Assembly (NCBI GenBank): GCA_000708835.1
Contig: DF237102.1
Coordinates: 1-64,000 of the forward strand
DNA from: Klebsormidium nitens
Taxonomy: Eukaryota > Plantae > Klebsormidiophyceae
Reading direction: 5' to 3'
DNA length: 64,000 nucleotides
The notes under the pieces were generated by a model. That model searched no databases and was not told the DNA's origin. It saw nothing but the letters and a program-made list of their open reading frames with translations. Below are positions 34,107-57,087 of the stretch, one piece after another (position 1 is the first letter of the stretch; each line of letters opens with the position of its first letter). The position numbers and the translations under genes are program-made.

Positions 34107-37100
34107 ATGGGGGGCCCCAGGTATGGGTCCAAGAGAAGGGGGGCGCCGGCGGGTGCTCTCCCATTGGGGTTGCTTCTACTCTGCCTTCTCGTGATAGCTG
34201 GTGAGCAATGACTGTCTTGAAACACTACGTATCCACCAGCAGAGACTCTTATTTTTCAGGCAGGAACTTAGATCAGGTTGGAAGAATGAGGGTAACTGTG
34301 TCCGTGAACTTCTTTGCTTCAGTGTGTCCAGAACAACGAGTTTCAGACTCGTGATCAAGGCATAATTTTGGGGTCATAACATCGTTCTCCTATTCCGTGA
34401 CATTTGATAATAGGCGCGCTGGCTGCCTTTGGTGGAGACAGCTTGACAAACCATAGGCAACGGACACTTGGCTGCTAAACTTAGATCCGATTTCTCGTTC
34501 CAGAACTGAGAACTTGAAATGTCCCTGATTCTTACATAAATCCAGCTCTGGAATCAAGGGGATCCCCTGATCGACAGATGTTAAGTGCAAAAGGACGACC
34601 CGGACAGTAACTACAGCTGTGACCCTGTGTCAAATCGCCTGACAACAAGGTCTGCATATTTTTTTTTCTTTTGAAAGAAAGACAAAAGTCTCTTTCAATT
34701 GGCGCTGAAAAGAAAGAGTGTTTCGTTTTCTCTCACTTTTTGGGCTATGAGCAGCCTATAGGCTACTTTTTCTAGTGGGGGATGGTGGTAATTCTTCCAG
34801 GGCTCGATTTCGGGACGCTGGGCACTCATAGCGGTTTTCTTCTCCTTTTAAAAAAGCGATTATGCTTCGTCCAAAGCTTATGTGGGCGCTTCTGCGAACG
34901 TACAAAACGAGAGGGCTGAGACGGAGCTGGATGAGAGGATCGGAGACACCTTTTGAGCAACCAAGAAGCGAGCTTTGAAAGGAGAAACCCGGTCAGATTG
35001 TTAATTTGCACGAGCAAAATTCCCTTCTGAAAAGTAGGGAAACGCGTTGTCTTTCTACAGCTTCGTGTGCCAAGTGCGATCTTTATATCAGCGTTAGGGT
35101 GATGGCAGGGGAGGTCTAGTTTGCCTGGCGCAGTCCTTAAAAGCATCGTTTTCTGCTGCCATCCAGTCCAAGGGAAATCAATATCTTTGGCGAATCTGTC
35201 GCAGTCACTTTGCCACTCACATTGTGAAGAGAACACTGCTGAATAAGTGGCTTGCGAATGCCTTTCTGGAAGAGGTTGAGGTGGAAGCTTGGATCTGCTG
35301 GAAAGCATTCTGAGTGGAGGGGAACAAGCAGCTTTGTTAGCAACGGCCACGTACTTCTTTACTTCCAAACCTTGAACGAATTGGTGTAAGGCCTTCTGAA
35401 GGGCTATTTTATGCTACGCTCCAGATCGAGCTGGGAATCTGAAAGTCCGCTCTTATGTGCCGACACAACAGACTCAGTCGAGAGTCCGTCTAATTCCACG
35501 CCGCTTTCCATTCTCAGGCGAGGCAGCGGACTCATACGGGAGCAACCAGAAGCAGACTCAACCCCCGTCGGCGACCAGCTATAAGGACTCGCAAGCGGCG
35601 GGTTATAAGGCGGCCAGCCCTTCTCCGAGGTTGTCGTACCAGCAGCCAACGCAGGCGTATAAGGCGCCGGAGGCGACCAAAGCGTATCAGGAGCCGGAGC
35701 GCACGCAGGCGTATAAGGCGCCGGTGGCCACCAAAGCGTATCAGCAGCCGGAGAAGACGCAGTCATATAAGGCGCCGAAGGCGACGAAGGGCTATCAGGA
35801 GCCGGAACGGACGCAAGCGTATAAGGCGCCGGAGGCCACCAAAGCGTATCAGCAGCCGGAGAAGACGCAGGCGTATAAAGCGCCTGAGGCGACGAAAGCC
35901 TATCAGCAGCCAGAGAAGACGCAGGCGTATAAGGCGCCGGAGGCCACCAAAGCGTATCAGCAGCCGGAGAAGACGCAGTCCTATAAGGCGCCAGAGGCAA
36001 CGAAGGGCTATCAGGAGCCGGAGAAGACGCAGTCGTATAAGGCGCCGGAAGCGACGAAGGGCTATCAGGAGCCGGAGCGGACGCAAGCGTATAAGGCGCC
36101 GGAGGCGACGAAAGCCTACCAGCAGCCGGAGAAGACGCGGTCGTATAAGGCGCCGGAAGCGACGAAGGGCTATCAGGAGCCCGAACGGACGCAAGCGTAT
36201 AAGGCGCCAGAGGCGACGAAGGGCTATCAGGAACCAGAACGGACGCAAGCGTATAAGGCGCCAGAGGCGACGAAGGGCTATCAGGAGCCGGAACGGACGC
36301 CGTCGTATAAGGAGCCGGAGCGTACGCAGTCTTATAAGGCGCCGGAGGCGACGAGAAGCTATCAGCAGCCGGAGAGGACGCAGTCGTATAAGGCGCCTGA
36401 GGCAACGAGAGGTTATCAGCAGCCGGAGCCAACGAAGGGCTATGGAAACCCAGAGCCGACTAAGGGTTACGGAAACCCGGAGCCCACCAGAAGCTATAGT
36501 AACCCTGAGCCAACCAAAGGGTATAAAAACCCAGAGCCCACCAAGGGTTACGAGAACCCCGAGCCAACCAAGGGTTACGGGAAACCGGAGCCCACGAAAG
36601 GGTACGGAAACCCTGAGCCGACCAAGGGTTACGGTAACCCTGAACCCACCAAGAGCTACGGGAAACCAGAGCCCACGAAGGAGTACAAGAATCCAGAGCC
36701 GACAAAGGGTTATGGAAACCCTGAGCCGACCAAGGGTTACGGGAAACCAGAGCCCACGAAGGAGTACAAGAACCCAGAGCTGACAAAGGGTTACGGGAAC
36801 CCAGAGCCGACGAAGAGTTACGGAAACCCTGAGCCGACTAAGGCTTATGGGAACCCTGAGCCAACCAAGGGCTACGGAAAACCGGAGGCCACGAAGAGCT
36901 ACGGGGATCCTGAGCCCACGAAAGGATACGGAAACCCGGAGCCGACGAAGGGCTACGGAAAACCGGAGGCTACCAAAGGGTCTGAAAAGCCTGAACCGAC
37001 GAAGGGTTACGGTAACCCTGAGCCGACCAAGGGATACGGAAACCCTGAGCCCACGAAGAATTACGGAAAGCCGGAGCCGACGAAGGGCTATGGGAGCCCA

Positions 37101-40100
37101 GAGCCGACGAAAGGTTACGGCAACCCTGAGCCGACCAAAGGGTACGGAAAGCCGGAACCCATGAAGGGCTATGGGAATCCTGAACCGACCAAGGGTTACG
37201 GGGACAAGCCCGAGCCGACCAAGGGTTATGGAGACAAACATGAGTCAACCAAGGGATACGGTGACAAGCCCGAGTCAACCAAGGGTTACGGGGACAAACC
37301 CGAGTCGACCAAAGGTTACGGGAACAAGCCGGAGTCAACCAAGGGTTACGGGGACAAACCTGAGCCGACCAAGGGTTATGGGGACAAACCTGAGTCGACC
37401 AAGGGATACGGTGACAAGCCGGAGTCAACCAAGGGTTACGGGGACAAACCCGAGTCGACCAAGGGTTACGGGGACAAGCCGGAGTCGACCAAGGGTTACG
37501 GGGACAAACCCGAGCCGACCAAGGGTTATGGGGACAAACCTGAGTCGACCAAGGGTTATGGGGACAAGCCGGAGTCGACCAAGGGTTACGGGGACAAGCC
37601 CGAATCAACTAAGGGTTACGGTGATAAGCCCGAGTCGACCAAGGGTTACGGGGACAAGCCGGAGTCGAACAAGGATTACGGAGACAAGCCCGAATCAACC
37701 AAGGGCTATGGGGACAAACCTGAGTCAACCAGGGGTTACGGAGAGAAGCCGGAGTCAACCAAGGGTTACGGGGACAAACCGGAGTCGACCAAGGGTTATG
37801 GAGACAAGCCGGAATCGACCAAGGGTTACGGAGACAAGCCGGAGCCGACAAAGGGTTACGGGAACCCAGAACCGACCAGAGGTTATGGCAACCCGGAGCC
37901 GACAAAGAGGACTCCGCCAGCACCCACGGATCGCCCGTACGGTAACCCGTCCACTAACCCGCCCAAGACTCCTGCGCCGAGCCACAGCACTCCCGCTCCC
38001 AAGCCCACCACGCCCCGCGGACCCCCCGACAGCTACCGTAAGTATTTTGTGTACTCAAAGGCTATTTGAGCATTTGGTCGAGGTCGACCGTCATTTTGCT
38101 CGGAATAAGCTTCTGCAAAGGAGAGTTTTTCGCGTCACGAGCGCGTTAAACGTCAGTCGCCCCAGTCTCTCGTCGTCAGGAACTCGCTTTCCAGTCGCAA
38201 ACTCGCGTTTCCGAGTAGACCGGAAGCGGGTCCGTTGAAAGTGAGTGCTGCTGCATCGTGTGCCTATACTTTATTTTTTTCGATTCCTAGACATACGTAC
38301 AAATGAGCGCGAATATGTTATATCGATCTCAGATCTCGTCTTTTTGGAAGGACAAGGACTTTCGAAGAGCATGACGGACTCTCGTCACATTATTCGGAAT
38401 GGTCCGCTTGTTGTCAGCTTCTCAATTTTGAGGGTCGCTTGCAGATGCGCACTTCTACGTTTGTGCGTATATGACATTCTTTTCAGCCGTTACTTGAGGC
38501 CAGAGCGATTCTAAACTTTTCCAAGCCTCGAGACCGGTTCTCAGTCTTGCTCGATCCCATGCTTCCGGTACAGTCCCTCTTCTGACATGTTTGCAGCTTC
38601 AGCTTTCAGCTCTTTCCGAAAGTAGGTCCAAGTTGCATCACCTTTTGCTTCTTGCAGGGATCTTTGAAATACTCAACTGAAATACTCAATTGAAATACTC
38701 AAGTTGCACAAGCAGCCCCAAACTCTCTCCTTCGGACGCGATTTGATCCTAAATAATCTCGGAGAGTCGATGTGAATCCTAGGCTTCGACCTCATTCGTT
38801 CTCGTTCCATACAGCCACAAGACCCCAGACTGGCACTTTCTGTCCTCGATTTTCATCGAGTGCCTGGATTCCTCTCCAGAATCTTCGAGTCAAACGGCTA
38901 AACCCCGATTTCCGTCACAGGTTGCTCCGGTTCCAGCTGCGCAACGGCCACCCACTCCTTCCAGCAGAGCCAAGCGCCCGGCGGATGGGCCTCCGGCCAG
39001 TGGATCTGGTTTAGCTCCGTTATCCAAACCTCCCGGTTGAACGCCCCGAGCACCGTTACGATTGCCCCGAGCACAATCTCAGTCTGCGGCCTGAGCATCC
39101 CAGCCCCCGCGGCAACGATTAGTTTCAGCGCGGGGCCTGCGTCGACAATCTTTTCGCGGGGGCAGTGGGTGACGTCAGCGAATCAGGGGAATGGTGACGT
39201 GTTCGCAGTCGGACTTGCGCACCAAGTCACCGCTTCCGAAGCGGTGGTTCTAAAATCTTGCGGCGGAGGGGGGTCCCAGTACAGCTGGACGCTGTGTGTT
39301 TCGGCTCTTTCCACCCCCCCGGCGGGAGTGGAGATCAGCTTCCAAGTGGCGGCCGCAGTTTACGCGCAGATGACCGGTGATCTGACCAAGGTTTACCCTG
39401 CCCCAGACAAAAAGTCAGCTAACCCGGGGTTAGGTTGCAACGCTCAGGCGTGCAGGGCCGGCTGTGCGAGGACTAACGACGCGGGGGCTCCTGCGGTGAG
39501 TACGAAAACCTGCTCGGATCCTTAAACACAGTGACATTGAAAATGTTGTTCTCGACAGAATCTACGTCGTTATAGATACATCTTAGAATGGCGAAGACTT
39601 TAGTATCGGCGAAATGCGTCAAAAGTACGCACCTAATGCATTGCAGTTGGAGCTGCAAAATGTTGACCCTGCATTTAACGGGCCCGACCTAATTTTTGCC
39701 AGACGTTGATTGACTAGTTACGTGGAATTTCCTTTTATCTCCTTCCTCGTTCCCTCCCGCAATGATCTTGGTATTCGTAAGCAAAGCATCTTTGACGGCT
39801 TCCGTGTACCTATCCTCTGTCTCCTTCTGTCCTGACATCGAACCGCCTCTTGGCGGCCATAGAGAAATCTCTGATGGAAAAGCAGAAAGCGGTTAATACA
39901 CAACGAAGCTCGTTTAAACAATCGCTGGTGCGGGCGACGGGAGCTCTTTCTGCAAGATCGCACCGAAGTACGTGGGGCTGTGATGCTCATATGATTCCGC
40001 ATCGCGTGCCACAGCAGAGTTAATTCTAACTTTGGCACAGGCCGTCGAAGCGCCAATTGCTCAATAGAATAGAGGCCAGTCGGCGCCAATCTGCGGATCC

Positions 40101-43100
40101 AAACGGGCTTCTCCGGCCGTACATATCTTCTGAAAGAATGCCCGCGAACTGAAGCACAAAGAACACACTCTTCGAAAACCTGACTCACGTTCTAGTTGGA
40201 ATTGCAGAGCTTTCTACCTACTCTGGAAAAACTCGTATATGAGTTTACCTTGCGTTTGTCCGCTGAAAGCATAAGATGCTTGCATTCTGACGTGGCTTAT
40301 GCTACTCGTCAATCCTGCAGGCCTTCGCCTGTTCCAGCAATCTTCTCGGCGGAGGCACGGGGGGGAAGGGTTCCAACTTCGTCGGCAGTTACTCAAACAG
40401 CCCAATGATCTGCATCGGTAAGGTCCTCGCTAAGAATCATTCTCCATCTCAGTAGTATTTGTGTCCGAGACCTAGTTCGAGACCGTCGAAGCAAGCCGGA
40501 AATCTTTGCGTGGACCACCAATGTTTCTACCGGAATTTCACCGTGAGTACGTCCGCTTATGGCGTTTAGGCAGAGCTCTTGTTTGTCGTGGAAGGCAGGA
40601 ACAGGGCATGATCATTGGCAATTTCAGGAAGGGAAACATTGATGCAAAGAATACAGGTTCAGGCTACAGACGTTCCGCTGACCCGGCTCCGTTCCGTTCT
40701 GGCTGCTTCAGGCGACACCCCAAACGGAACACCGGCGCCCACCACGGGCTCTCCGACCGGTGTCCCAACTAACCCACCTACTAACCCACCTGGTACTCCA
40801 GCTACGAACCCTCCCACCAGCCCTCCCACGAACCCGCCCACTAACCCGCCTGGCGCTCCTCCGACGGACGCTCCAACCAACCCTCCAAACAACCCGCCCA
40901 CTACCCCTCCTACTGACTCTCCCACTAACCCTCCAACCAACCCGCCCACCGACTCCCCAACTAGTGCTCCAACTGGATCGCCCATTAAACCTCCCATTTT
41001 CTCGCCCACTGATGCCCCAACCAAAACCCCGACTGATTCTCCTACCATCCCTCCCACTAATCCGCCGAGTAACCCGCCGACCAACCCTCCCACCAACCCG
41101 CCAACAAACCCGCCTACAAACCTGCCCAACACGCCCACCAACCCGCCCACCAATCCACCCACTAACCCGCCCACTAACCCGCCCGGTACGCCCACCAACC
41201 CGCCCACCAGCCAACCCGCTAACCCNNNNNNNNNNNNNNNNNNNNNNNNNNNNNNNNNNNNNNNNNNNNNNNNNNNNNNNNNNNNNNNNNNNNNNNNNNN
41301 NNNNNNNNNNNNNNNNNNNNNNNNNNNNNNNNNNNNNNNNNNNNNNNNNNNNNNNNNNNNNNNNNNNNNNNNNNNNNNNNNNNNNNNNNNNNNNNNNNNN
41401 NNNNNNNNNNNNNNNNNNNNNNNNNNNNNNNNNNNNNNNNNNNNNNNNNNNNNNNNNNNNNNNNNNNNNNNNNNNNNNNNNNNNNNNNNNNNNNNNNNNN
41501 NNNNNNNNNNNNNNNNNNNNNNNNNNNNNNNNNNNNNNNNNNNNNNNNNNNNNNNNNNNNNNNNNNNNNNNNNNNNNNNNNNNNNNNNNNNNNNNNNNNN
41601 NNNNNNNNNNNNNNNNNNNNNNNNNNNNNNNNNNNNNNNNNNNNNNNNNNNNNNNNNNNNNNNNNNNNNNNNNNNNNNNNNNNNNNNNNNNNNNNNNNNN
41701 NNNNNNNNNNNNNNNNNNNNNNNNNNNNNNNNNNNNNNNNNNNNNNNNNNNNNNNNNNNNNNNNNNNNNNNNNNNNNNNNNNNNNNNNNNNNNNNNNNNN
41801 NNNNNNNNNNNNNNNNNNNNNNNNNNNNNNNNNNNNNNNNNNNNNNNNNNNNNNNNNNNNNNNNNNNNNNNNNNNNNNNNNNNNNNNNNNNNNNNNNNNN
41901 NNNNNNNNNNNNNNNNNNNNNNNNNNNNNNNNNNNNNNNNNNNNNNNNNNNNNNNNNNNNNNNNNNNNNNNNNNNNNNNNNNNNNNNNNNNNNNNNNNNN
42001 NNNNNNNNNNNNNNNNNNNNNNNNNNNNNNNNNNNNNNNNNNNNNNNNNNNNNNNNNNNNNNNNNNNNNNNNNNNNNNNNNNNNNNNNNNNNNNNNNNNN
42101 NNNNNNNCGCCCACAATCCACCCACTAACCTGCCCACTAACCCGCCCGGTACGCCTACCAACCCGCCCACGAATCCACCCACTAACCTGCCCACTAACCC
42201 GCCCGGTACGCCTACCAACCCGCCCACCAGTCCACCCACTAACCCGCCGACAAACCCGCCCGGTACGCCTACCAACTCCCCCACCAATCCACCCACTAAC
42301 GCGCCCACTAACCCGCCCAACACCCCGGCGCCTACACCCACGGAATCTCCCCTGCCGCCCCCGACCGGGTTACCGTGCAAACCCGACTTCGTCTGCTCGT
42401 TCCTGCGTCCGGTTTCGTCCGAAAGCGAGCTTTCGGACGCCCTCACGGACCTGTCCGTCTGCGGGGCGACCCTGGTGGGCGACGTACAGCTGTCGGAGTC
42501 GCTGCCACCTGTCAGGCGCGTGTTTCAGATCAAGAGCAACGCGGCGAAATGCGCGAGCGGGAGGTGCGCGATCCTCGGCTCGGGACAGGACGGCGTGTTC
42601 CAGGTCGTGACCGGGGGAGGGCTGTACCTGCAGAGCGTCATCATTCAAGGAGGGGTGCAGGTGACATTTACGGCAATATTTCCGCGGCTGTTTTTTCGTT
42701 GAATATTCCGGTGGGGCTCATATCATTACCGGCCTTTTTGGCAGGTGCTCTTTCTCCGTGCCACATTCACCGGAGATCGCATCCAACAGAGCTGTGGCTC
42801 CAGCTTACAAGGTTTCAAAATTCTTGACCTCAAGAAGAGTGCAAATCGCACAGCGAATCAGATATACGTTGTTGTTTTATAATCGCTGGTTGTACCCTGG
42901 TTAGCCCGCTTTCAAATCGAGGAGGAACCGTAATGACCCATTTCACCTGATTGATTGAGATTGTTGACCAATATTTTGCAGGCAGCGGGAGGAGCCGTCA
43001 CAGTCGGCTGCGGAGGCTACCTGATCGCCGGGAACGTCGACTTCAAAGGAAACCAGGCCAGAGTATGTCGACCTTGATCACTTTGCTTCTTAATGGAAAG

Positions 43101-46100
43101 GATTTCTTGGTCCCCACAGCCTTTACGCCTGTTCTGAAGGCCTCAAAAAGCTCTTGCCACTTGAAACGAAAGCACGCTTCCGAGTTCTTCGAAGGTTCCA
43201 ATAATATGCGTGACAGAGAAAGTCTGAGCGTGGCCGTCGAGATATTGCCGATACCCCTGCCGCCGCGCGGTTGAAGATGCGGCGGAAAGTGATACCTTGC
43301 GTCCCGGAGAAAGGCGACTTATTCGTCTCCTACAAGTTTGCCAGCTTGCAAGCAAAGCAAGTGAACACATTTTACAAGAAGGCAGTAGAACGCGGTTTTG
43401 AACTATTGAAACCCTTGAGCATCGTCTTCTGTGGACGATTCAGCCAGCTGCCCTGCAAAGTCGCTGCCCTTATCTTTTCCTCCTGTACCTGACTCAATTT
43501 CCGCTTGGCATTCCGCCGGAGCTGACACGGGTTCCGTCTTCATGGCGTTCAGTCGACGGCGTCGAACAAGCTGGCGGGCGGAGGCGCGGTCGCGGTACTT
43601 GGCGGCGGAGCCCTCTTCAAAAGCTGCGTCTTTGAGGAGAATCAAGCATCCGGTGCAATGGTGAGGGCAGTCTCAAAGTTTCCGGTTGGCATATCAGACC
43701 ATCTACTGGTTTCAACTAGATGAGCGATAAGTAAAGCTGGGAGATATGAGCTGAAAAGTCGAAGTGATAGGGTCGAAAATGAAGATCCCTATGGACGACG
43801 ACAACCCCACTTGTTTACGAATGTGCGGCAACGACGGCTGAGCCGCATAGTGACAGGGCCGTTGACTCGGTTCAAACCCGTTTGCGCTTTCTTTGCCAAG
43901 AATCTTCTCATACGTGGAAAGAAAAGGTCAGCAATCAGCTGGGCTTAGTGGTCGTTTCGTTTCCTTGCAAAAGTTCGCAAAGTACAAAGCTCACGAGAAC
44001 TTGGTTTTGTGTGTAGGGCCGTTCCAACGGAGGCGCTCTGCTGGTTATGGGCGACGCGAACGACGGGTGCCCCAGCGGAACGGCCGTTCTTGAGAACAGT
44101 GTCCTTGCTAGCAACAAGGCGCAGGTGAGCGGTGCACCTATTCTGAATTACGTCCTTGAAACAAGCAGCTACGAAGAAGTTATGAGACCGAAATAACCCA
44201 AGTCTTATGATAGAATCGGTCTATAACCCTTAGGAGCGTGTTCCTACGAATGTCCTTTGTTAAATGGACCGACGTTTCAGTGGGTTTTGCAGATCTCTCC
44301 CTTGCACATGCTGAACCGGCCGCTTTTTCGACAGCCCTTCGCCATAGATGCATTCGGAAAAGGGGCAATTTTCAAATCTTCTCGCTAAACAGCGAACTTT
44401 CAAAGTGAGAAAATCAACTGATGAACAGAAAATTTCTCGTGTTCAAGCTGGTCATAAGTCAGAATTGTTCGTTCACAGGATTACGGAGGCGCCGTGTACG
44501 TCGGCGAAGGCGGCCTCGCCTATTTGGTCTCGACGCAGTTCAGCGGCAACAGCGCCGGCGCGCCCGCGCCCACGAGCGCGCGCGCGGGCGGCGCGGTCGC
44601 GGTCCAGGGCGGGCGCGCGTTCTTCGACGCCGCGGTCTTCACCGCAAACGCCGATCAGGTGAGCAGCTCGAGATCGTCTTTGAGACAAGTGATACAGGAG
44701 TTTTTCCTCTGGGCGCTCAATCTACTGATCGAGTGTATGAGACCCCTCGAGATTGCATCAGTCGAAAGCAAGAGACAAGCCCTGATATGGTGGGATACCA
44801 GTTGATAGGGACGGTTGCAGCGAACAGGGAACAACTCTCCTTTTTGTGGACTCCTATGAAATAGCCTAAAGAAGTGTTCCGACGTGGGACGTTAGCAACG
44901 AAGGGCTCAGACAAAGCACTCACCGGTCCTTAGCAGGCTCTAGCTCAGCTTTTCAAACTCATAAGAAGCGAGAATGAAAGACATTACGAACTCATCTGGA
45001 AGACAAGGAGGAAGAAATCTTCATAGATATCTGAAACGAAGTGTAACAAGAACAAACGGTTCCGACTGATGCAGGTCGGCGCCAACCACGTCCACGTGGA
45101 CGGCCCCGGCAGTCGCGCGGCCTTCTCCCCGATCGCTCCCCCCTCCGTGACGTCATCCAACCAGGGCGTGACGTCATCTCGGAGTACCTGCAAGCCGCCC
45201 CCCTGCCTGATGACCTCTCCCTCTCCCTTCCCACAAAATTCCCCGTCACCGTCACCGCAGACGTCACCAACCCCATCGCCGCTGACGTCAGTTTCGCCCT
45301 CTCCGGGGTCATCCCCCTCTCCCTCTCCCTCTGCTTCGCCTCCCCCGGGGACCTCCCCCGAACCCTCTCCTTCCTCTCCGCCGCTGACGTCACCGTCCCC
45401 GTCACCGCTGACGCCACCTTCGCCGTCAGCTTCACCAAACCCGGAGGGATCCCCCGAGCCCTCTCCGTCTGCTTCGCCGTATCCGGAGGGATCCCCCGAG
45501 CCCTCTCCTTCTGCGTCGCCCAACCCGGAGGGATCCCCCGAGCCGTCCCCTTCTTCCTGGCCAACGCTGTCACCTCCTCCTGAAAAGATCGTCATCCCAA
45601 GCCCGTCTTCTTCGCCAGTGCCCGAGCCATCAGGTATTAATAGAGGCCACTTAACTTCACCTTGATTCCAAACGATTTTGCACTCTTCAAATTTGAAGCC
45701 CAAGTAAGGCGAGCTTTGAACTCACAGGTTTCACCTGAAAGAGAGAAGGCTTGATATGCTTGTGACTGCTGCTTCGGTTTGCGTTTGCGCATTTTCAATC
45801 CCCTGCACTCCATCATCCTTCGTTACGTTTGTTGGAACTTTCTAAATCTCTCGGAACAGCACGGGAGAAGTGTTTGTTCCTGTCTCCACCTCTCTGTACA
45901 TTCTTCTTGGAACCATGTCGGAACACTTTTGAAACACCGACTCATTTACTGCCCCAATTTCCGCCCTTCAAGGCTCAGGCAGCCTAGTATTCTGATCATC
46001 TCAGGTCATCTTATGATGCCACGCCTTCAGAAAGTTTCACGTGTGTTATGGTCCAAGACTTTTTTTGCCTGGTTGAAAGGAACCCAGGGGACTCTGAAGA

Positions 46101-49100
46101 TTTTAAGCTAAGAGACGCATGTTCCTTTATTGACCCCAGTTTTACGTGTCAAAGCCTAGACTCTTCGAACGTGGGCATCTACTACATGTCGGTCAAAATT
46201 TCGTCGACCTTCCCCAGACCTTGTCCTGATAACGAACGCAAACTTAGCTTTTACCCACCAATAACCCACTTTCCAGGCTCCCCGTCACTACCCCCCGGCG
46301 CGTCTCCATCCCCTCAACCGAGCGCCTCCCCCGAGCTCCCCCCCTGCTCCCCGCCCCAGTACCTACAGGGTTACGGCTGGGTTTACCCCGACACCACTAA
46401 CTGCATTCCTAACCCCTCCCCGTCGGCGTCCCCGGCCACTTCCCCCGGTCTCTCTCCCAGTCTTCCCCCGTGCGACCCGCCCGAGTTCCAGGAGGGTTAC
46501 GGCTGGGTTTACCCGGAAACAGATAATTGCGTTCCCCAAACCCCAAACCCCTCCCCTTCAGGGTCCCCGGTAGCTTCCCCCGGGCAATCTTTGCCCCCCT
46601 GCCCGCCCCCTCGTTATAACGAGGGTTACGGCTGGGTTTACCCGACCGCCAGGGACTGCATCCCGCAGGCCCCGGGGGGATCCCCCTCCCCGGTCCCTTC
46701 CCCCAACCTGCCCCCGTGCGCCCCGCCCCGGTACCAACCGGGTTACGGCTGGGTTATGCCTGACCCCGCTAACTGCATTCCGTCCAACCCTTTGACGTCC
46801 CCCGGTACCTACTTCCCCGAGGCGTCTCCGTCCGCTCGTCCCATGCATATGCCTTCCCGGTCTCCTAATCCGGGCGGTTACCCGAGTGGAATACCTAACC
46901 CGGGTACTTCACCAAACCCCGGCAATATGCCTTATCCGGGCGGGTTACCTAACCCGGGTGGGGCACCTAACCCGGGTGGTTCGACTAACCCGGGCGGTCT
47001 GCCGCCATGCCCACCCCCCGTCTTCGACGCGCGCGTCGGTTGGCTGTACCCCGACCCAACCAAGTGCCAACCAAATACCAACCCTACTGGTAAGAGACAG
47101 CTTGAGGTTAGAGGTTTGTACCGTTCACATGCATAAGAATTAAAGACGTACTTAAGACGGCCAAGAGAATGCTTCTGTTCTCGCCGACCCACCAACTTCG
47201 ACCGGTTCGCTCTCTGATTCCAGAATTACGGTTAGATTACGACGTAGGAGCCGTCTTCGCATGTTGTTTTCATGGTTCGCCTTTGAAAGACTCATGTAGA
47301 ACGCAAACGGCGACATCAGGATAGACCTGGGATAAGAGCGAGTAGGATCGGTTGTTGAAAAGCTTTTTGTTGGGCTTATGGGCTGCACATCCTTGCCAAT
47401 GCTGAAAGGGTCCGATGCAAATTAGATGAATCCTGCGCCTCCGATATTCTGAGGTGCCTCTGCTCTTTGTCGAAAAGCACTAGTCACTACAACAATCCGG
47501 AATTCGAAAGAGCGGAGACCAAGCTACATAAGGATCAGAACACATTTGATCGGAGAGACGCGCTATCTGCAGGCACCCCCAACAATTGGTACCCTGGAAT
47601 GCCCGGCGGTTTCAACAACCCTCCGGCCATGTACCCCAACTATGGGCTGCCCCAGTACCCGCAGCAACCGGGGTACAACTACCGGGCAACCCATCACGGT
47701 AGATTCTCCGTTCACGCCCTTTTCCGTTCCACTTCGATTGATTGGCCGAGTAGATCCGTCACAGCATTGACTATCCAGACCGTTGCTGCATAAGCAATTT
47801 GAACAAGTCTGTGAACCGCGGTGCAATCTGATCCTCTTATCCCTTGTAAAGAAAGTGTATTCTAAATCGGCTTCATCAGTTTGAGAGAATACCTCACTCC
47901 GTCTTTGACCCCCTTCATAACCCTCGTCTAACCCCTGTCGTTAACCCCCTCCTAGACCACTCGCGCGGTCATCGCCACCGGTCAGACTCCGAAGGCGGCG
48001 ACGGACAGATCGTAATCAACATCGAGGAGAATTTCAACGGTGGTGATGCCCGGGAGAGCCGTACCGGCTGGGATGAAAACGACGAGTACCAGCAGTCCGG
48101 GCCCCGATATGGGGGCGCCGGGCAATACGGCGGGCCGGGAGTTAACCTCCAGGGTTTTTGGCCCGGTAACCAGGGTTACGGTGCCGGGTTTGGCCAGAAC
48201 TGGCCGGGTCAAGCGAACTGGGGGCCCGGGTCTCTGGTGGAGTTCCCCTCCAGTACCAATCCTACCGGTCACGGTAAGGAGTGTTAACATTCGAACTCCG
48301 CGCTAATGTTTCTCCGCGCTGTTATATAACCTTCTCGAGAATAAGGCATTCCTAGCTGATTCAATGACTTTGCATTGCAGTCCAGAGGAATGAAGCAAAG
48401 CCGAAGCCAAGCTTGTTGCCTGTCCAAGTGAACTCTGCGTTCGCTCGATATGCACAAGAGTTCGTCGTGGCATACTCCGGATCTTTGAGTTAGCCGTATG
48501 AGGTGATACCTCAGGATGAAGCACCTACGATCAGCGAGATACACAGAAGAATTAGATTCACTCTTTGGAAAACGAGACCCTGGAAGGCGTCAAGAGAACC
48601 GCAACAACTGCTTCTGCATCTTAGACTCATCCGCTGAAACTGCCCACGCTATCGTTGCAGGACACAACAACGAAATGCGCGAGGAGCCCGCGCGCGAGCA
48701 GCCCGAGCGCGAGCCGGAGCGCGCGGACTTCCGGCAGCTGAGCTCCCGCGACGTGGAGCTGTTCAAGGCGGGGATGGAGTACGGGCGGCAGATCGGGAGC
48801 GGAAACAGGCAGCCGGAGTGAGCCGCTGCCGCTGCCGCTGAATTCCTTTTCTTTTTCGATATCCTCACAGTCGAGACTAGAAAACCTCGACTGGTCGACC
48901 AACACACGTCGAAAAACAACAGACGCGCTGTCGAGGTTTTCTGGAAGTTTTGGTAGGTTCTTAATGATCGCAATTTTGCGGTTTGTCTCCAACCGGCAAT
49001 TTTGTGAAAATAGTCTAGGACGTAAAGCGGAGACGTAGACACAAAGATGCACGTGATCGAAATCAAAAAAAAAATCTCGCAGTCCGTTCGATCCCGATCC

Positions 49101-52100
49101 GAATGTAAACAGTCGTCTCACAGATGCCCTTTCGAACACACTTGACGCGCCGCGTCAGCCGGAGTATAATACGCTTCTGCTGAACTCGCCTCGCCTTGCT
49201 CTGCGTATGGTTTCCGGTTCGAAGTTGACACGAAGCCTACCTTCACGAGAGCATCCGCAAACCGCAGTTGTAAGTGCGTCTGTTCTATTTCCAGCTTGCA
49301 AATTCTAAAATAACCTTGCTTTCTCTGTTTGAAGGAACCCTCATGCCGAGGGACGCAACCCGGACCAGCCAAGCACCCCGGAGGGATCCCCCGAGCACGA
49401 CACAGAAACAGAGTATCATGCGGACCGTTCCAGCAGCCCGGAGGAGCCCTCCGAGCCCGTGGCAAGACACGAGGATGTGTCAGAGTATCACCTTGAGAAC
49501 GCTGACGGACCGGTTGACACTCAGAACGCTTACGCGGAGCCGCAAGAGCACCGAGACGAAGAGTCGGGACACGCAAACGGTGACGAGCACGAGAGCCCGG
49601 TAGAGCAAACCGAGCAGTATTCCGAAGGACGCGAGGAACGGGAAGAGCATACGGAGCAAGCGTACGGAAACGAGGAGCATGACGAGCGGATGCGGACACC
49701 GGAACCGGAACAGGAATACGCACCGGAGCCAACGCCGGAACCTACACCGGAACCTACACCGGAACCCACTGAATACACGCCGGAAACGAAACCGGACCCG
49801 ACACCGGAACCGACGCCGGAACGGACGCCGAGCCCGACTGCAGCGCCCACACCCGCGCCCACGAAAGCGGCTGTAACGCTGAAGCCATCTGTCTGGCCAG
49901 CGTTACAGTCGAAGGACGGGAAGCCGATCGCGATCGAGGCTGCAACGGGCCAGAACCTGAACGTTCTGTCGTGTTCCGCTCTGCAAGCGAATGTGCACCT
50001 GACGAACGGAAAGGACGGAACGCTGGTAAGCGAAAATTCTCGCCTTGCCTTCTAATTTGTAAGCTCTAACTTTTGATAAGGTACGGGAACAAAGTAGGCG
50101 GACTTTATTGAACTCCAAAAAATGTGTATCTCGCTGAGCCGGGGAAATCATGTATCGTTCGAGGATGAGCAATTCCTCTCCAAAGTATGAAAATCACTCT
50201 GTTTGTCAGGATGTATCCCTTTGTGCTGTCTTTCCTGTGCAAATTACACTTCTTCCACGCACGCTTCTATTTGGCCAACCACTACAGTCTTTCAGCCTTC
50301 CTGTGACGTGTTGCTCCGATGGGCACCCGTGAATGGATTTCATTGCACGCTTTCTCGGGTGATTTTTCAATGATTATATTACAGGGTCCGACGTCCCGAA
50401 GATTATCTTACCTCCTTGAAGAGAACCCGTACAGACACAACAAGTCTTCTGGTGGTCTTGCTACCTTTCTCCTGTAACCTTGACGGCTGTGAGACTATCT
50501 CTGGAAAAGGTTCTTATCCACACAAACCGTTCTCGCTTTCTGCGCGAGCAGTGCACAACAAATCGAACCAGAAGAATTCTCACCATGTCACTTTTGAAAT
50601 TCCCACACCAGGAACAAGCAGCATGTCATCTCTTACGAGCAAATTCGATTCAAAAAGCTCACGCCTCTCGGCGCTTTTCCTTCTTGCCCGCAGTACATCG
50701 ACAAAGTGGGCGTCACCTTCAAGTGGCAGAAGATCCAGGTCGACGCCGCGAGCACCGCGGCCGCGCGCGCGCAGCGCTTCTACGGCAAGCTGACGACACC
50801 GAACGTAAGCCCATCTGCCCCGTCCTATTTCTTTCCGCTGATGAGACAGCAAAGTTCACATCTTTTCAGGGTTTCCGTCAGTAAGCGATCAAGGGTGCCG
50901 GTTGGAAAACTCGTCTAAAATCGATAAAGGGCAAGTAACAACTTGCAGTGACTCCCAGCACAGCTGCCCTGTTTCCAGCAACTCCTTGATGACGTAGAGT
51001 GAGGCACCTACCTCACAATAGGACAAGTCATATTTCGCTGGGCGGACAAGACATTGATGACACTGGTGGCGGACCCGTCGATTTGAGGCCCTGTTGACTA
51101 AAAGCGTGATGGTCTGATTCAGAATGGAAGCCTTCAAACATATGACCAAAATACCTAAAAGATAACCCAACAAGATACCTGCTCTGCACCTGTACCCATC
51201 CTAAACCGCCAAGTAACTCCAACGTTACCAGGCTGGCGAGCTGATTTTCCTTCGGCTATCATTCCGGATGTATACCCTCTTTTTAGTTCAAAATAGATAT
51301 CTGCGTTTCTCCTCTCAACGTATCAGCATGCGTGCAATTGAGTAACATTCGAGCGCTAACGTTCAACAACTTACCTGCACTCCAATTTCAGAGGCCCCTG
51401 CTGGATCGCCAGCGCCGCTACTTCTTCAACGGAATGACCGTCGACCGGAGCGGAAACGAAGTATACGTGGCCGTCAACGACAGCCCAGTGCTCCACATCC
51501 AGATCGTTCCGTCCGGCGCTTCCGCCACCGGACCCTTCCTGGATTATGTAAGACCGGAAACTTTCGATTTGACTACATAAGGATGCAACATTTGCAGTGC
51601 TGATTTTTAGATGAGGTCCCTCCTCTAATCGGCTTTTCGCCCTCTTACGACTGCTCTGCAGAAGCGCTGCTCGTCGAGTAATCTTGGCTGCAGCTGCCTG
51701 ATCAGTCTCCTGCATTCAAATCAGAGCTTATTTGCAACGAGGTGGTCCGCACCTCGATCTAACCCGGTTGTTCATCGCTGAGCTCCTTGTAGACAGTTCT
51801 ACCTAGCCCTGACATAACCTAGGTGTTCATCGACAAGTTTCTTGCAGACGATTCGAGGTAGCCTCGACTCAAGCGGCGTGCTCATTGATGGATACCTTGT
51901 AGACGAAGTAGTTAGCCCCGAATGCCGGCAGTCTAACCTCCTTGGACCGCGGGCTACATTCCGCTGATTCCTATCCAAATGCTTCCCACCTGCAGCTCAT
52001 CGTGCAAGTGTTGGGCGTCCCTGCTGGCGACACGTGTCACGGCCTGATTGGCCAGACGTTCGTTCCTGGCCACGGTGATCGGGTGGACGGCTCGCCGGCG

Positions 52101-52695
52101 GACTACCTCGCTGACGATGTGCTGAGCACGACTGGGGCTTACTCCCGGTTCCAAGTGAGTGGGCGCAAATCAGTCCTTCCAGAATGGGGAAAGCTGCGCT
52201 TTATGCCTCTAAATCGAAACCTTGGAATAGAGGTCGGAGAAGCTACGGTTTTTCGGACTAGATCCTGAACTTGGACTACAAGTTGGGAAGTTAGGGTATA
52301 TGTGTCTGGATTAGAAAGTTTGGACTGCGAACTGGCAAACCGGTGAAGCTCCTCAATCGAACGATGACTAGAGCATGACTCGACTAGGCCCTTCCGTCAT
52401 ATCTTGAGCGAATGTTCTCACGCTTCCCCTCAGGCTTTGCTGCTCTCCGCTTCTCAATGCCTCTTAACGAATCTTGGATGTTCTTTTCTCGTGCACGGTC
52501 AGTGGTCTCAGGCTCTCGGAACCTCGCAATAAACCCGTGATGTCCCTACATGTCCTCTTTGCTGCTTTCCACTCTTTGATATTGACGCTCTATTGATCCT
52601 GGATTGCGATTTTTCTCGTGCAGGGTCAGTGGTATCAGGCTCTCGGAATCTCGCCTGCCCCGGGCGCTGTTAGCCCCACCTCGAGCCCACACTAG
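34107..52695 (+). CDS. Giant secreted mosaic cell-wall/adhesion glycoprotein, ~2,900 aa, 18 exons: 34107-34200, 35518-38037, 38921-39495, 40321-40417, 40712-42660, 42982-43062, 44017-44124, 44479-44658, 45075-45633, 46277-47089, 47573-47698, 47956-48273, 48661-48817, 49335-50025, 50694-50804, 51392-51547, 51996-52154, 52624-52695
   Basis: Every junction is GT-AG and phase-compatible. Exon 1 encodes a signal peptide (MGGPRY...ALPLGLLLLCLLVIAG). Domains in order: Tyr/Lys repeats, beta-rich Cys domain, TNPP repeats, GGA-x/F-x-x-N beta-helix repeats, SP repeats, Cys-YGWVYP modules, G/Q/Y-rich segment, acidic PEPT segment, and a root-cap/vWD-like C-terminus (CHGLIGQTF...YSRF). The last exon is less certain. 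Confidence 0.8.
35630..37900 (+). repeat. Coding tandem repeats in three blocks: 54-bp (YKAPEATKA-YQQPEKTQA), 27-bp (YGNPEPTKG), 30-bp (YGDKPESTKG, about 22 copies)
   Basis: Directly visible in the translation of ORF 35457-38069. Confidence 0.97.
40740..42345 (+). repeat. Coding (T/S)NPP / PTNPP mucin-like repeats spanning the large gap
   Basis: ACTAACCCGCCC-type 12-bp units on both sides of the N run. Confidence 0.93.
41226..42107. other. Assembly gap (~882 N) within the TNPP repeat exon
   Basis: Run of N flanked by the same repeat. Confidence 0.99.
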
Positions 52696-54419: not shown

Positions 54420-57087
54420 CTAGGCCCCAAACATCGAAAGCGTCTTCATCGCCAGGAAGAAGTCCGTGTCATAGCTTATTGACGAAGGCCTTGCTACCTG
54501 CACCCGGTTCCCCGTCCAGACGCTTATTTTCTTGGCCGCCTCATTCTGCATAATCAGCACCCGGCGCCCCTCTACCGATTCCACGGGCCGCAGCATCCCG
54601 TCGATCGGGGCTGGCAACCGGTACAGGATGACGTAACCATCGTCATCCGTGACGATGTCACCCTCGCCCAGCACGCCGTGGTGCGGCTTCACCGTCAGGT
54701 GGAGCAGCGCGGCGACGTCGCCAAGCCGCATCGCGACCTGGCTGGTCGCCGTCAGGTTCTCCACGCGCGCGCGCGCGAAGAGGCGCCGCAACGTGGCGCT
54801 CCCGGACATCGCGGACAGCGCCACGTCAGTGCCGAAGTTGTAGTGCTTGACGTCCGTCAGTCTGCCGTCGCAGTACATGGGGATCGTGCGCGAATTCGAG
54901 GGGGATCCCTCGTACGTCGGCTTGAGCTGCTCCGCGCGCGCGTCCGCGAGCGGCTGCCGCGGGTTGCAGGTCGCGCACATGCGCCCGCTGCTCTCGCCCA
55001 CGGCGTGCCACGTAGTGGGGCGCTGTTGGACGATGAGCTCCATCGCGCTGCCTTGCATGTACCTGGAGTGAAAGGAGACGTTGAATGGAGCAAAAGGGTG
55101 GGGACGGCAAGTCGAAGGAGGCGTTTTCAGTATTGTTCAATTCGACAGGTATTATCAAGAATCACGAGCCAAATAAGACCGATCTTGAAGGACTTCGAGA
55201 TCCGCTCCGACTATAAAGTCCCGTTTTCAAGGCCATATGCCCTTATAAGATTGACGCGGATTGAACATTTATGTCGATAGAGAAGCTCCCTTTCTCAGAT
55301 CGGCGCTGTGACTCGACCTTCCTTCATGTTCTCATGTATCCACAAGTGGTCTGAACATGGGGTCTCGGTTGACTGTGATGTATCAGTTATACGAGAAAAG
55401 CGGGAGGGGTCATGACCGAGAAAGCGATCGCAGAAGAAGGTCGTAGGAGAGACGGCCGCTCAGTTCGGCAGGTGGCTGATTGACTTCATGCCCCTGGAGA
55501 ACTAGAGCGGCGAGTACTGGGAAAGAAATTCATCGTGACCCAGCGGAAGAACTGCCGAGGCTGTTACTTCCGGAGGGATGACTCATCGGCGCTTGTGCGG
55601 ACGGGCAAGATGCTGTGTGGTAAGCACGTCGACGTCACAAACGAAGAAAGGCGTGTGAACATTTAACCTGGTGACGTCTCTTCCGTTTTGAGACTACAAT
55701 AGTAAGCGGCGTGGACGACCGACCTCTCTTCGGAAGTCAGAGAACATTTGAGGTCTCGTCCGACTATTCAGAGTCTATGTAAGACAGAGGAAGCATCTGA
55801 CGGCAAAAAAAGACAAGTCGACCGCTTGTCCTGGTTTTCCTTGCAAGGCATGAGAGTGCAAGGGTTGGGAGACCGCGCAGGCGGCCGCGGCGCCCAATCG
55901 GCTTCTGCACAATAGCAGATTCTCAAGCGTTTGAAAATGATCATGATAGGCTTTGCTTTTCTGGTGGACTAGCAGCGGTAATATGAAACCAACGATGTCG
56001 ACGCCGCAATTCGATCGGTTGGCATTTGGTCCCACAAAGAAGGAAAAAGGTGAGCAGTAAATGGAAAACGTTTGATCGTAGAAGGTGAAGTCAAGCAAAC
56101 AGCTCGTAGGGGCAAAGGTGGTGTTTCGGTTGAAGGGCACGGACACTGCTAAAGCCTTGTCGAGGATACAAGCAGCCTAAGATGACGGCTTTCTTGGTAC
56201 GTGTTTAGAAGTCCGATCTTATTCTCCACAGGGAAAAGAGAAAGCGGGGAGAAACAACACACCCTTTGACATCTCGAGAATGAAGACGGTGCACATCTCT
56301 GTACTGCGGAACGAAACTCTCCTTATACCGCCTGAAAACAAATCGGTGCACGTCGGTACATACCCGAGACAGAAGAACCGCGCCGTGTCATTTACCCACA
56401 GGTGCGTATACACAAACAGGCTGGCCTTTGCGCCGCGCCCGGTTCCCTCCCCATATGCGGCACTGTAGATGACGATTGGGTCCGCGTTCAACGGCCCGAC
56501 GGTGAGCGTCGTGTCGGACTCCCTCAGAAGAAGGAGCTTGAGTAGCAACAAGCTCTCCTGGTTGCGGCAGTAAACCTGATTCACATAAATTTTGTCAATA
56601 TCTGCTCATTCTTGAGGTATCCAAGCGAAATTTAGCGTTTCCAAGAATCGAATCAGAATGTCCCTTTTCAGGCGCATCCCTTATTGCCATTCTGACTTTG
56701 TAAATGATTCTACAGGAGCCACGAACTTCGAAGTTGGTTTTACTGCTCAGCCGACCACGGTTTTACCGGTACAAGTACACGATGTACGCGGTTATCAAGG
56801 CTTACTGGAATCTGGAAGCAACTCTATCACCAACTTTTGAAAAGAAAAAACGGTAAACCTGCCATGTTCCGTATGAAATATTCGGCCAGACTCACCTTAT
56901 ACCAGTATCCTTTTACGTTGCTCTCTTCCGCCGGAACGGGTCCGAAGCTCGACGGATTTCCGTCCGCGGGCAGCGCGGAGGCGAGGTTCAGCGCGAGCCG
57001 TAGCAGGCGCTCGCGCTCGCGCCGCAGCAGGGCCTCGCTCGTCTCGGTGAAGATGGTGGAAAAGGTCCACGTGAAACTAGTCGCCAT
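54420..57087 (-). CDS. Hypothetical protein, ~348 aa; exons 57087-56896, 56575-56364, 55062-54420
   Basis: GC-rich coding-like segments joined by phase-compatible sites (AAG|GTGAG, GG|GTATGT, CCAG|G); exon sum 1047 nt. No family recognised with confidence. Confidence 0.65.

Follow-up and report, generated by a model that had tools for sequence, protein, structure and literature searches.

A probable giant gene for a secreted, multi-module wall-type protein in Klebsormidium nitens, with a bacterial-type beta-sandwich divided by an intron

The soil green alga Klebsormidium nitens carries, on contig DF237102.1 of assembly GCA_000708835.1, a series of long open frames between positions 34107 and 52695 of the 64,000-nt stretch that we analysed (the window, positions 1 to 64,000 of the forward strand), and these raise the question of whether they belong to one gene or to several. 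One frame appears to end at a TAA at 39523-39525, and an assembly gap lies within another. An earlier prediction, made from the sequence alone, proposed that the stop is bypassed by a donor at 39495 splicing in phase to 40321 and that the whole span encodes a single secreted protein. Using comparisons with other algae and with bacterial homologues, we find that the TAA is very probably intronic, with exon 38921-39495 joined to 40321-40417. We consider it likely that 34107-52695 on the plus strand is one 18.6-kb nuclear gene of 19 exons and 18 introns, and our confidence in this model is high for the portion 34107-43660.

The stop at 39525 and a domain divided between two exons

The features that decide whether the apparent stop is real are the following.

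38921..39495, plus strand: exon 3, core of a bacterial-type beta-sandwich, 191 aa with 8 Cys
39496..40320, plus strand: intron 3, 825 nt, phase 0, containing the apparent stop
40321..40417, plus strand: exon 4, 97 nt, encoding AFACSSNLLGGGTGGKGSNFVGSYSNSPMICI, a C-terminal motif conserved in the exon 3 domain

The donor GCG/GTGAGT (39495/39496) is in phase 0 and lies 9 codons before the TAA, and both it and the acceptor ctgcag/GCC (40320/40321) rank first in their interval. Exon 4 is followed by the donor TCG/GTAAGG (40417/40418), which is paired with the acceptor cttcag/GC (40711/40712). In the initial model this intron had ended at 40627/40628, an acceptor that was dropped since conservation with a related alga begins only at 40711/40712. 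A candidate first exon opening with MILVF at 39763 was likewise rejected, as it lacks conservation and as coding in exon 4 precedes any start codon.

For cross-species comparison we used two algal loci, namely L001, a 4.6-kb contig of a related alga (Logan SRR23617307) reached via protein P0005, and L002, a 119-kb Joint Genome Institute (JGI) metagenome contig of a distant alga, which is 43-45% identical. L001 is syntenic with the window and can be aligned only at the end of exon 2, at exon 3, at exon 4 and its near flanks, at the Pro-Thr (PT) repeat and the cap encoded by exon 5, and at exon 6, with the intervals 38058-38897, 39503-40287, and 40499-40697 being unalignable. Its donors and acceptors are conserved. 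Differences between the window and L001 fell at codon position 3 in 91 of 135 cases (P = 7e-16), with counts at positions 1/2/3 of 17/13/45 in exon 3 (84% identity), 2/0/11 in exon 4, 2/2/13 in the cap, and 1/1/9 in exon 6, a pattern that shows purifying selection on those parts of 34107-43660 comparable with L001. In exon 4, whose two splice sites are conserved, 11 of the 13 differences are at position 3 (P = 2e-4), and this bias means that the exon is coding from its first base. Furthermore, because exon 4 has a conserved acceptor and no start codon of its own, it requires an upstream exon ending in phase 0, and the only conserved exon upstream does end in phase 0. Reading on past the donor gives a different product in each alga, with VSTKTCSDP and then the stop in the window, VSNKLQTLSRSMV... 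(VSNKLQTL...) in L001, and VSSTAYAHYV... in L002, and the shared 'VS' of these tails is simply GTGAGT or GTAAGT read as codons. L002 also carries an equivalent of exon 4, and introns 3 and 4 recur there at the same places, in phase 0 after GAGIPT and in phase 1 after ...SNSYPVCV(G).

Protein searches and structure predictions were run exon by exon, which lowers sensitivity for the beta-helix and C-terminal domain described below. With exon 3 as query, phmmer matched P0005-P0008, with E values of 1.6e-4 and 2.3e-4 to P0007 and P0008, and a search with P0008 recovered at least 1,818 bacterial proteins with a common N-terminal domain of ~210 residues followed by SdrD_B/Cna-B-like domains. In these proteins the domain is preceded by an LExLEDRxVPS leader, and its alignment ends in the near-invariant, contiguous motif YxNSDHAGTPEAFKxFVxGGARGGGGSNFTGSYSAT. 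Using hhalign against the bacterial profile, exon 3, which corresponds to the domain core (SNFNGT...WFSSV...WQWAAAVY), aligned at positions 59-193 (probability 97.4, E 1.3e-11) and exon 4 aligned at positions 221-242 (probability 94.6, E 6.6e-8), with intron 3 splitting the domain between ...NDAGAPA and AFACSS..GGGTGGKGSNFVGSYS. Since exons 3 and 4 match successive parts of one domain that is contiguous in intronless bacteria, they belong together, and since termination at 39525 would leave that domain truncated, the proposed in-phase splice past the stop is upheld by both orthology and domain colinearity. The original prediction had described a beta-rich domain at this point, and this is indeed present, although its membership of a bacterial family and its completion by exon 40321-40417 had been missed.

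Neither Pfam nor NCBIfam has a model for the bacterial beta-sandwich, which we put forward as a candidate new domain family. Among GTDB species representatives we identified 208 loci, mostly from soil, in Gemmataceae and other Planctomycetota, Acidobacteriota, Verrucomicrobiota, Thermoanaerobaculia, Chitinophagales, Dyella, Solirubrobacter, and others. AlphaFold gave a predicted local distance difference test score (pLDDT) of 36 for exon 3 alone, and for a bacterial homologue it produced a beta-sandwich with a pLDDT of 90 and a predicted template modelling score (pTM) of 0.87. A Foldseek search of the PDB with the bacterial model returned nothing at E <=1e-3, PDB sequence searches were empty or insignificant, and a metagenome scan with the algal domain alignment gave no match. 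Examination of 1.8 billion cluster representatives revealed, besides bacteria, only two algal-looking clusters, which are the intron-bearing L001 and L002, making the window gene the third such locus. The three algal copies form one clade in our tree (Shimodaira-Hasegawa-like approximate likelihood ratio test, SH-aLRT, 100), and they sit on a branch so long that no bacterial donor can be named. A tentative scenario, which we hold to be possible and on balance doubtful, is that the beta-sandwich reached algae in an old transfer from a bacterium, was recruited to wall proteins, and was later split by the two conserved introns, and that the gene would be the first long chimeric protein of hydroxyproline-rich glycoprotein (HRGP) type documented in a streptophyte alga.

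Three further observations were made around this domain. At L002:6602-10958 a signal-peptide exon and the beta-sandwich with its two introns are followed by ~5 repeats of TPCWGACPSGxTCSKPCPSDGSKCQDAKYCSTPPP, and the architecture around the domain there differs from that of the window gene and is shorter. The first ~80 nt of intron 4 (40418-40498) show 88.6% identity to L001, with coding ruled out by an indel of 11 nt and by divergent read-through, and they may represent a splicing or regulatory element or be linked to the antisense RNA described below. Finally, 36 nt within intron 3 (39652-39687) match the interiors of otherwise unrelated contigs from two other runs at 90-95% and are probably a short dispersed repeat.

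Modules upstream and downstream of the beta-sandwich

The N-terminal part of the product is encoded by two exons.

34107..34200, plus strand: exon 1, ATG and signal peptide, 31 codons and 1 nt
35518..38037, plus strand: exon 2, 839 aa of Tyr/Lys-rich tandem repeats

The ATG at 34107 opens MGGPRYGSKRRGAPAGALPLGLLLLCLLVIA, which has the highest hydrophobic score of the ATG-led open reading frames (ORFs) in 33-53.5 kb, and no second signal-peptide-like start was found among them. Exon 1 is predicted to splice in phase from CTG/GTGAGC (34200/34201) to the acceptor at 35517/35518. Exon 2 is built from units of 18 aa (AYKAPEATKAYQQPEKTQ type), 9 aa (PEPTKGYGN), and 10 aa (KPESTKGYGD), with tandem-repeat periods of 54, 27, and 30 nt, and contains 86 Tyr, 122 Lys, and no Cys. 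Its frame was confirmed by the third-position bias of its tail against L001 (differences 2/4/13), and its donor C/GTAAGT (38037/38038) joins in phase to cacag/GT (38920/38921). A word search with exon 2 gave protein matches only to P0001-P0004, apparently arthropod proteins of ~800-850 aa with KPTKGYGAP and SQSYGAP repeats, one of which begins with a chitin-binding-like Cys motif, and these repeats look convergent with the PEPTKGYGN of the alga rather than homologous to it.

Downstream of exon 4 the reading frame enters a stalk that contains the assembly gap.

40712..42660, plus strand: exon 5, PTNPP mucin-like stalk including the gap, then a Cys-bearing N-terminal cap and the first turns of a Pmp-like beta-helix

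The gap consists of 882 N (41226-42107) placed inside a tandem repeat, with the 12/57-nt PTNPP unit on either flank. The frames of the two flanks were set independently, on the left by the upstream splice and on the right by the open frame into the beta-helix cap to 42660, and both translate as PTNPP, giving a stalk of at least 250 residues plus the gap. In addition, L001, which is free of N, has a single 357-codon ORF that runs from AASGDTPNGTPAPTT through ~215 PTNPP-repeat residues to the cap ...CASGRCAIRGSGQDGVFQVVTGGGLYLQSVIIQGG. The non-repeat part of exon 5 has 97% protein identity to L001, with its acceptor cttcag/GC also conserved, and coding continuity across the gap is likely.

The remaining exons of the model are listed here.

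42982-43062, 43553-43660, 44017-44124, 44479-44658, plus strand: exons 6-9, Pmp-like turns, all phase 0-0
45075..45633, plus strand: exon 10, Ser-Pro-rich extensin-like tract, prediction only
46277..47089, plus strand: exon 11, five two-Cys modules PPCxPPx[YF]xxGYGWVYPDxxxCxP with SP and PNPGG linkers
47573-47698, 47986-48273, plus strand: exons 12-13, low-complexity Gly/Gln/Asn/Tyr/Pro tract, prediction only
48661-48817, 49335-50025, plus strand: exons 14-15, Glu/Pro-rich acidic tract with PEPT repeats, leading into the C-terminal domain
50694-50804, 51392-51547, 51996-52154, 52624-52695, plus strand: exons 16-19, C-terminal domain with CHGLIGQTF, stop TAG 52693-52695

The Pmp-like module comprises ~255 residues spread over five exons, and within exons 6-9 the motif GGA[ILV] occurs six times and FxxN four times. 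Conservation in L001 covers exon 6 and the exon 7 acceptor, exons 8 and 9 being predicted, and a metagenome scan with a beta-helix exon found no match. Exon 10 is 32% Pro and 28% Ser, with 33 SP and two SPPP, mostly arranged as SP or SPSP. A word search with exon 11 gave no match, and neither a relative nor a family was found for its two-Cys module. The end of the protein had been described as root-cap/vWD-like, and this did not hold up in our searches, as the C-terminal exons and read-through ORFs gave no Pfam match at E up to 1-5, Root_cap (PF06830) and vWD (PF00094) included, with the short exons limiting sensitivity, and no match among PDB sequences or in the Atlas. The root-cap-like label goes back to a single motif, HGLIGQT, which may resemble root-cap proteins.

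Exons have a GC content of 0.58-0.70 and introns of ~0.45-0.50, and the window is eukaryotic in character. Exons were chained by dynamic programming on codon log-odds and splice scores with an open frame required, and when this was started at the right edge of the gap the best chain terminated at the TAG 52693-52695, which is also the originally predicted end, with the placement of the last exon only marginally better than its alternatives. The top-ranked donor of the interval is used in 14 of the 18 model introns, and in 11 of 14 in the chain from the gap to 52695, and the model acceptors mostly rank 1-3 within their intervals. The resulting model has 19 exons, 18 introns rather than the 17 first counted, and 8,844 coding nt, corresponding to 2,947 codons with ~294 estimated for the gap. 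Besides the signal peptide, no transmembrane segment, other hydrophobic segment, or glycosylphosphatidylinositol (GPI)-like tail was found in the modelled product, so it would be fully secreted, as had been proposed. The order of modules likewise came out as first described, running from the Tyr/Lys repeats through the beta-rich domain, PT stalk, Pmp-like units, SP runs, Cys modules, and Gly/Gln/Asn/Tyr tract to the acidic segment.

One gene or several, and its transcription

A number of observations speak against reading the whole span as one intact and expressed gene. The true length of the gap, and hence the frame at this point, is not fixed by the assembly, and intron 1, like the 12 introns downstream of 43660, is a prediction of the model. 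The weakest junction is that from 48817 to 49335, with a donor GGA/GTGAGC that overlaps an in-frame TGA (48819-48821) and an acceptor tttgAAG. The Pmp-like repeats of the original prediction do recur as GGA[ILV]/FxxN motifs, but their matches to PF02415 (17.2 and 16.0 bits, E 0.006-0.014) stay below the Pfam cut-off of 20.6, the exons having been scanned singly, which lowers the score. Structural comparison of the beta-sandwich gave generic matches, with a best Z of 5.5 in VIA (pilin-like, carbohydrate-binding-module-like, and adhesin-like sandwiches) and TM <0.3 in the Atlas. No annotated protein of the locus surfaced in protein searches. Likewise, none of the RNA runs contained more than 7% of the words of 38040-40760, the matches present being antisense, and no sense-strand spliced RNA was seen in run contigs over that interval.

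These points leave room, above all, for two or more adjacent genes, of which the first, the well-supported one, would extend from the signal peptide to the Pmp-like module or as far as the Gly/Gln/Asn/Tyr tract and end downstream of 44658, for example at the TGA 48819-48821, with the acidic and C-terminal-domain exons forming a separate gene. In favour of such a division, the junction from 48817 to 49335 scores lowest in the model for both donor and acceptor (ranks 5 and 8) and read-through there gives GAG TGA, the introns after 43552 have no cross-species or RNA evidence, and dynamic programming is bound to return an in-phase path of some kind. However, every downstream exon opens at an acceptor, the first ~118 codons of the acidic exon 15 lack an ATG, and no signal-peptide-like ORF is present in any proposed intron, including 48822-49334. 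Exon 14 has a top-ranked acceptor and is thus internal. Furthermore, the downstream non-coding stretches are uniformly intron-sized (287-668 nt) and composition carries across the junctions, from SP-rich to SP-rich, from P/G/N/Y to P/G/N/Y, and from E/P/R to E/P. We therefore regard a division into adjacent genes as unlikely, and favour a single gene. Cross-species support covers only five introns (38038-38920, 39496-40320, 40418-40711, 42661-42981, and 43063-43552). The single-gene claim stands across the apparent stop and the gap, where orthology, domain colinearity, and the L001 ORF bear it out, and downstream of 43660 it is a prediction.

RNA from the region bears on whether such a gene is expressed. 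In two contigs, from two runs of one study, we identified one further feature.

40410-40249 and 39490-39381 or 39397-39363, minus strand: exons of an antisense spliced transcript

Its joints, 39489>40248 and 39396>40248, have CT..AC ends that are canonical only on the minus strand, and no displacement of the cut turns them into GT..AG on the plus strand, which identifies the contigs as antisense transcripts that have been spliced. One donor (40248), without a conserved counterpart in L001, is joined to either of two alternative acceptors (39491 and 39398), and the result is a low-level RNA overlapping the 3' part of exon 3 and exon 4 in which no long ORF was found. On the sense strand, exon 3 was missing from the contigs of all 24 listed runs of the species, although contigs lose rare transcripts and cannot show absence, and an exact look-up of five ATG-led ORFs in the protein collection gave no match.

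The structure could accordingly be real and the gene silent or decaying, being unexpressed or transcribed only in antisense, as the absence of exon 3 from these contigs, the exclusively antisense joints, and the lack of an annotated protein would suggest. Against this, third-position differences with L001 are in excess in every comparable exon, frames are open over 8.8 kb, and splice sites are intact, and wall proteins specific to a stage such as zoospores, attachment, or stress would escape bulk cultures. We judge a silent locus to be improbable. Least plausible is a split at 39525, with one gene stopping at the TAA and a second beginning before 40321, for although the in-frame stop follows the donor closely and the 825-nt interval could house a promoter and does yield a spliced transcript, that transcript is antisense, nothing is conserved in 39503-40287, two other algae have the same intron, exon 40321-40417 is coding throughout with a conserved acceptor and no usable start, and termination would lose the near-invariant C-terminal motif of the domain, so that the two-gene outcome which the original prediction had named as its own refutation is contradicted by the conserved exon 4 and by domain colinearity.

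Relation to known wall proteins and adhesins

The product of the single gene is most likely a secreted, non-membrane, multi-module protein of ~2,950 residues and a long chimeric HRGP-like component of the cell wall or extracellular matrix. Its closest described kind would be the long chimeric extensins or HRGPs of green algae, of which the locus appears to be a variant. Such proteins of >2,000 aa are known from Chlamydomonas, Volvox, and Ostreococcus (Liu et al. 2016, PMC4769139), and the earlier statement that no equivalent had been described was too strong, although they were reported as absent from Klebsormidium flaccidum (PMC4769139). Like them, the window gene encodes a signal peptide, >2,000 aa, and Ser-Pro or Pro-rich tracts among non-HRGP domains, with a presumed matrix role. 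Unlike them, it has few SP3-5 arrays and uses PTNPP as its main Pro-rich spacer, and it adds the 839-aa Tyr/Lys head, the bacterial-type beta-sandwich, and the Pmp-like turns. Under the BIO OHIO definition of a long chimeric extensin (PMC4769139), we find the signal peptide, at least two SPPP, >2,000 aa, and non-HRGP domains, an assignment that holds only under the single-gene model. Classical extensins have Ser-Pro3-5 arrays and YXY cross-link motifs throughout, and the window protein departs from this pattern in having two SPPP only.

Comparison with adhesins gives a similar mixture. Pmp repeats, also present in Trichomonas, mediate Chlamydia adhesion (PMC2997323, PMC6701047), and the window protein shares with these adhesins (PF02415; PMC2997323, PMC6701047, PMC11166332) the GGA[ILV]/FxxN motifs in units of ~27-36 residues, which in Pmps form beta-helix coils. 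It differs from them in having no autotransporter barrel and no barrel-like or hydrophobic C-terminus, and its Pmp-like part spans only ~255 residues, scores below the Pfam threshold, and has a putative beta-helix fold. With the bacterial P0008 family it shares a whole domain, exons 3 and 4 being colinear with it including GGxxGGxGSNFxGSYS, and the partner domain of that family, SdrD_B, is typical of surface adhesin stalks. However, identity is 31-33%, and the algal copies have 8-10 Cys, two introns, and a long branch of their own. Cross-linked or adhesive units are found in the repetitive proline-rich proteins of plants (PPVYK) and in mussel foot protein 1 (AKPSYPPTYK). Exon 2 resembles these in its short tandem units with regular Tyr and Lys beside Pro, whereas the window units are rich in Glu, Thr, and Gly and no homology was detected.

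From these modules we infer a function as an adhesin, wall, or attachment protein. In such a protein the SP-rich, Cys-loop, Gly/Gln/Asn/Tyr, acidic, and C-terminal modules would be carried on the same transcript as the upstream exons. Its Pro-rich tracts would be hydroxylated and O-glycosylated to form stiff spacers, and peroxidases could cross-link the Tyr-rich repeats into the wall, a process known from plant extensins and proline-rich proteins. The modules that fold, namely the beta-sandwich, the Pmp-like helix, the Cys loops, and the C-terminal domain, may then bind wall polymers or a substrate, the whole acting as a tether or adhesive.

Of the neighbouring loci, the upstream one lies on the minus strand at 28540-29691, perhaps extending to 32363, and matches GT61 glycosyltransferases (PF04577, E 2.9e-6 and 2.9e-4); it stands head to head with the giant gene, at least ~1.7 kb from the ATG at 34107. 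Downstream, 54423-55277 forms an island of high GC (0.61-0.69) in which both strands carry long open frames; Pfam gave no match for it, and it is probably an exon of the next gene.

Most interesting in this locus is an undescribed domain of bacterial type that an old intron divides. Through it the stop-or-splice question could be resolved without RNA, as a domain that is contiguous in intronless homologues reveals which exons pair. Klebsormidium is a model for green algal adaptation to land and its wall proteins are poorly catalogued, and this locus may have evaded annotation through its repeats, the assembly gap, and low expression. If our interpretation is right, it would show a streptophyte alga building a matrix or adhesive protein from cross-linkable Tyr/Lys repeats, glycosylated spacers, and folded modules, with at least one of the folded modules common to the alga and soil bacteria.

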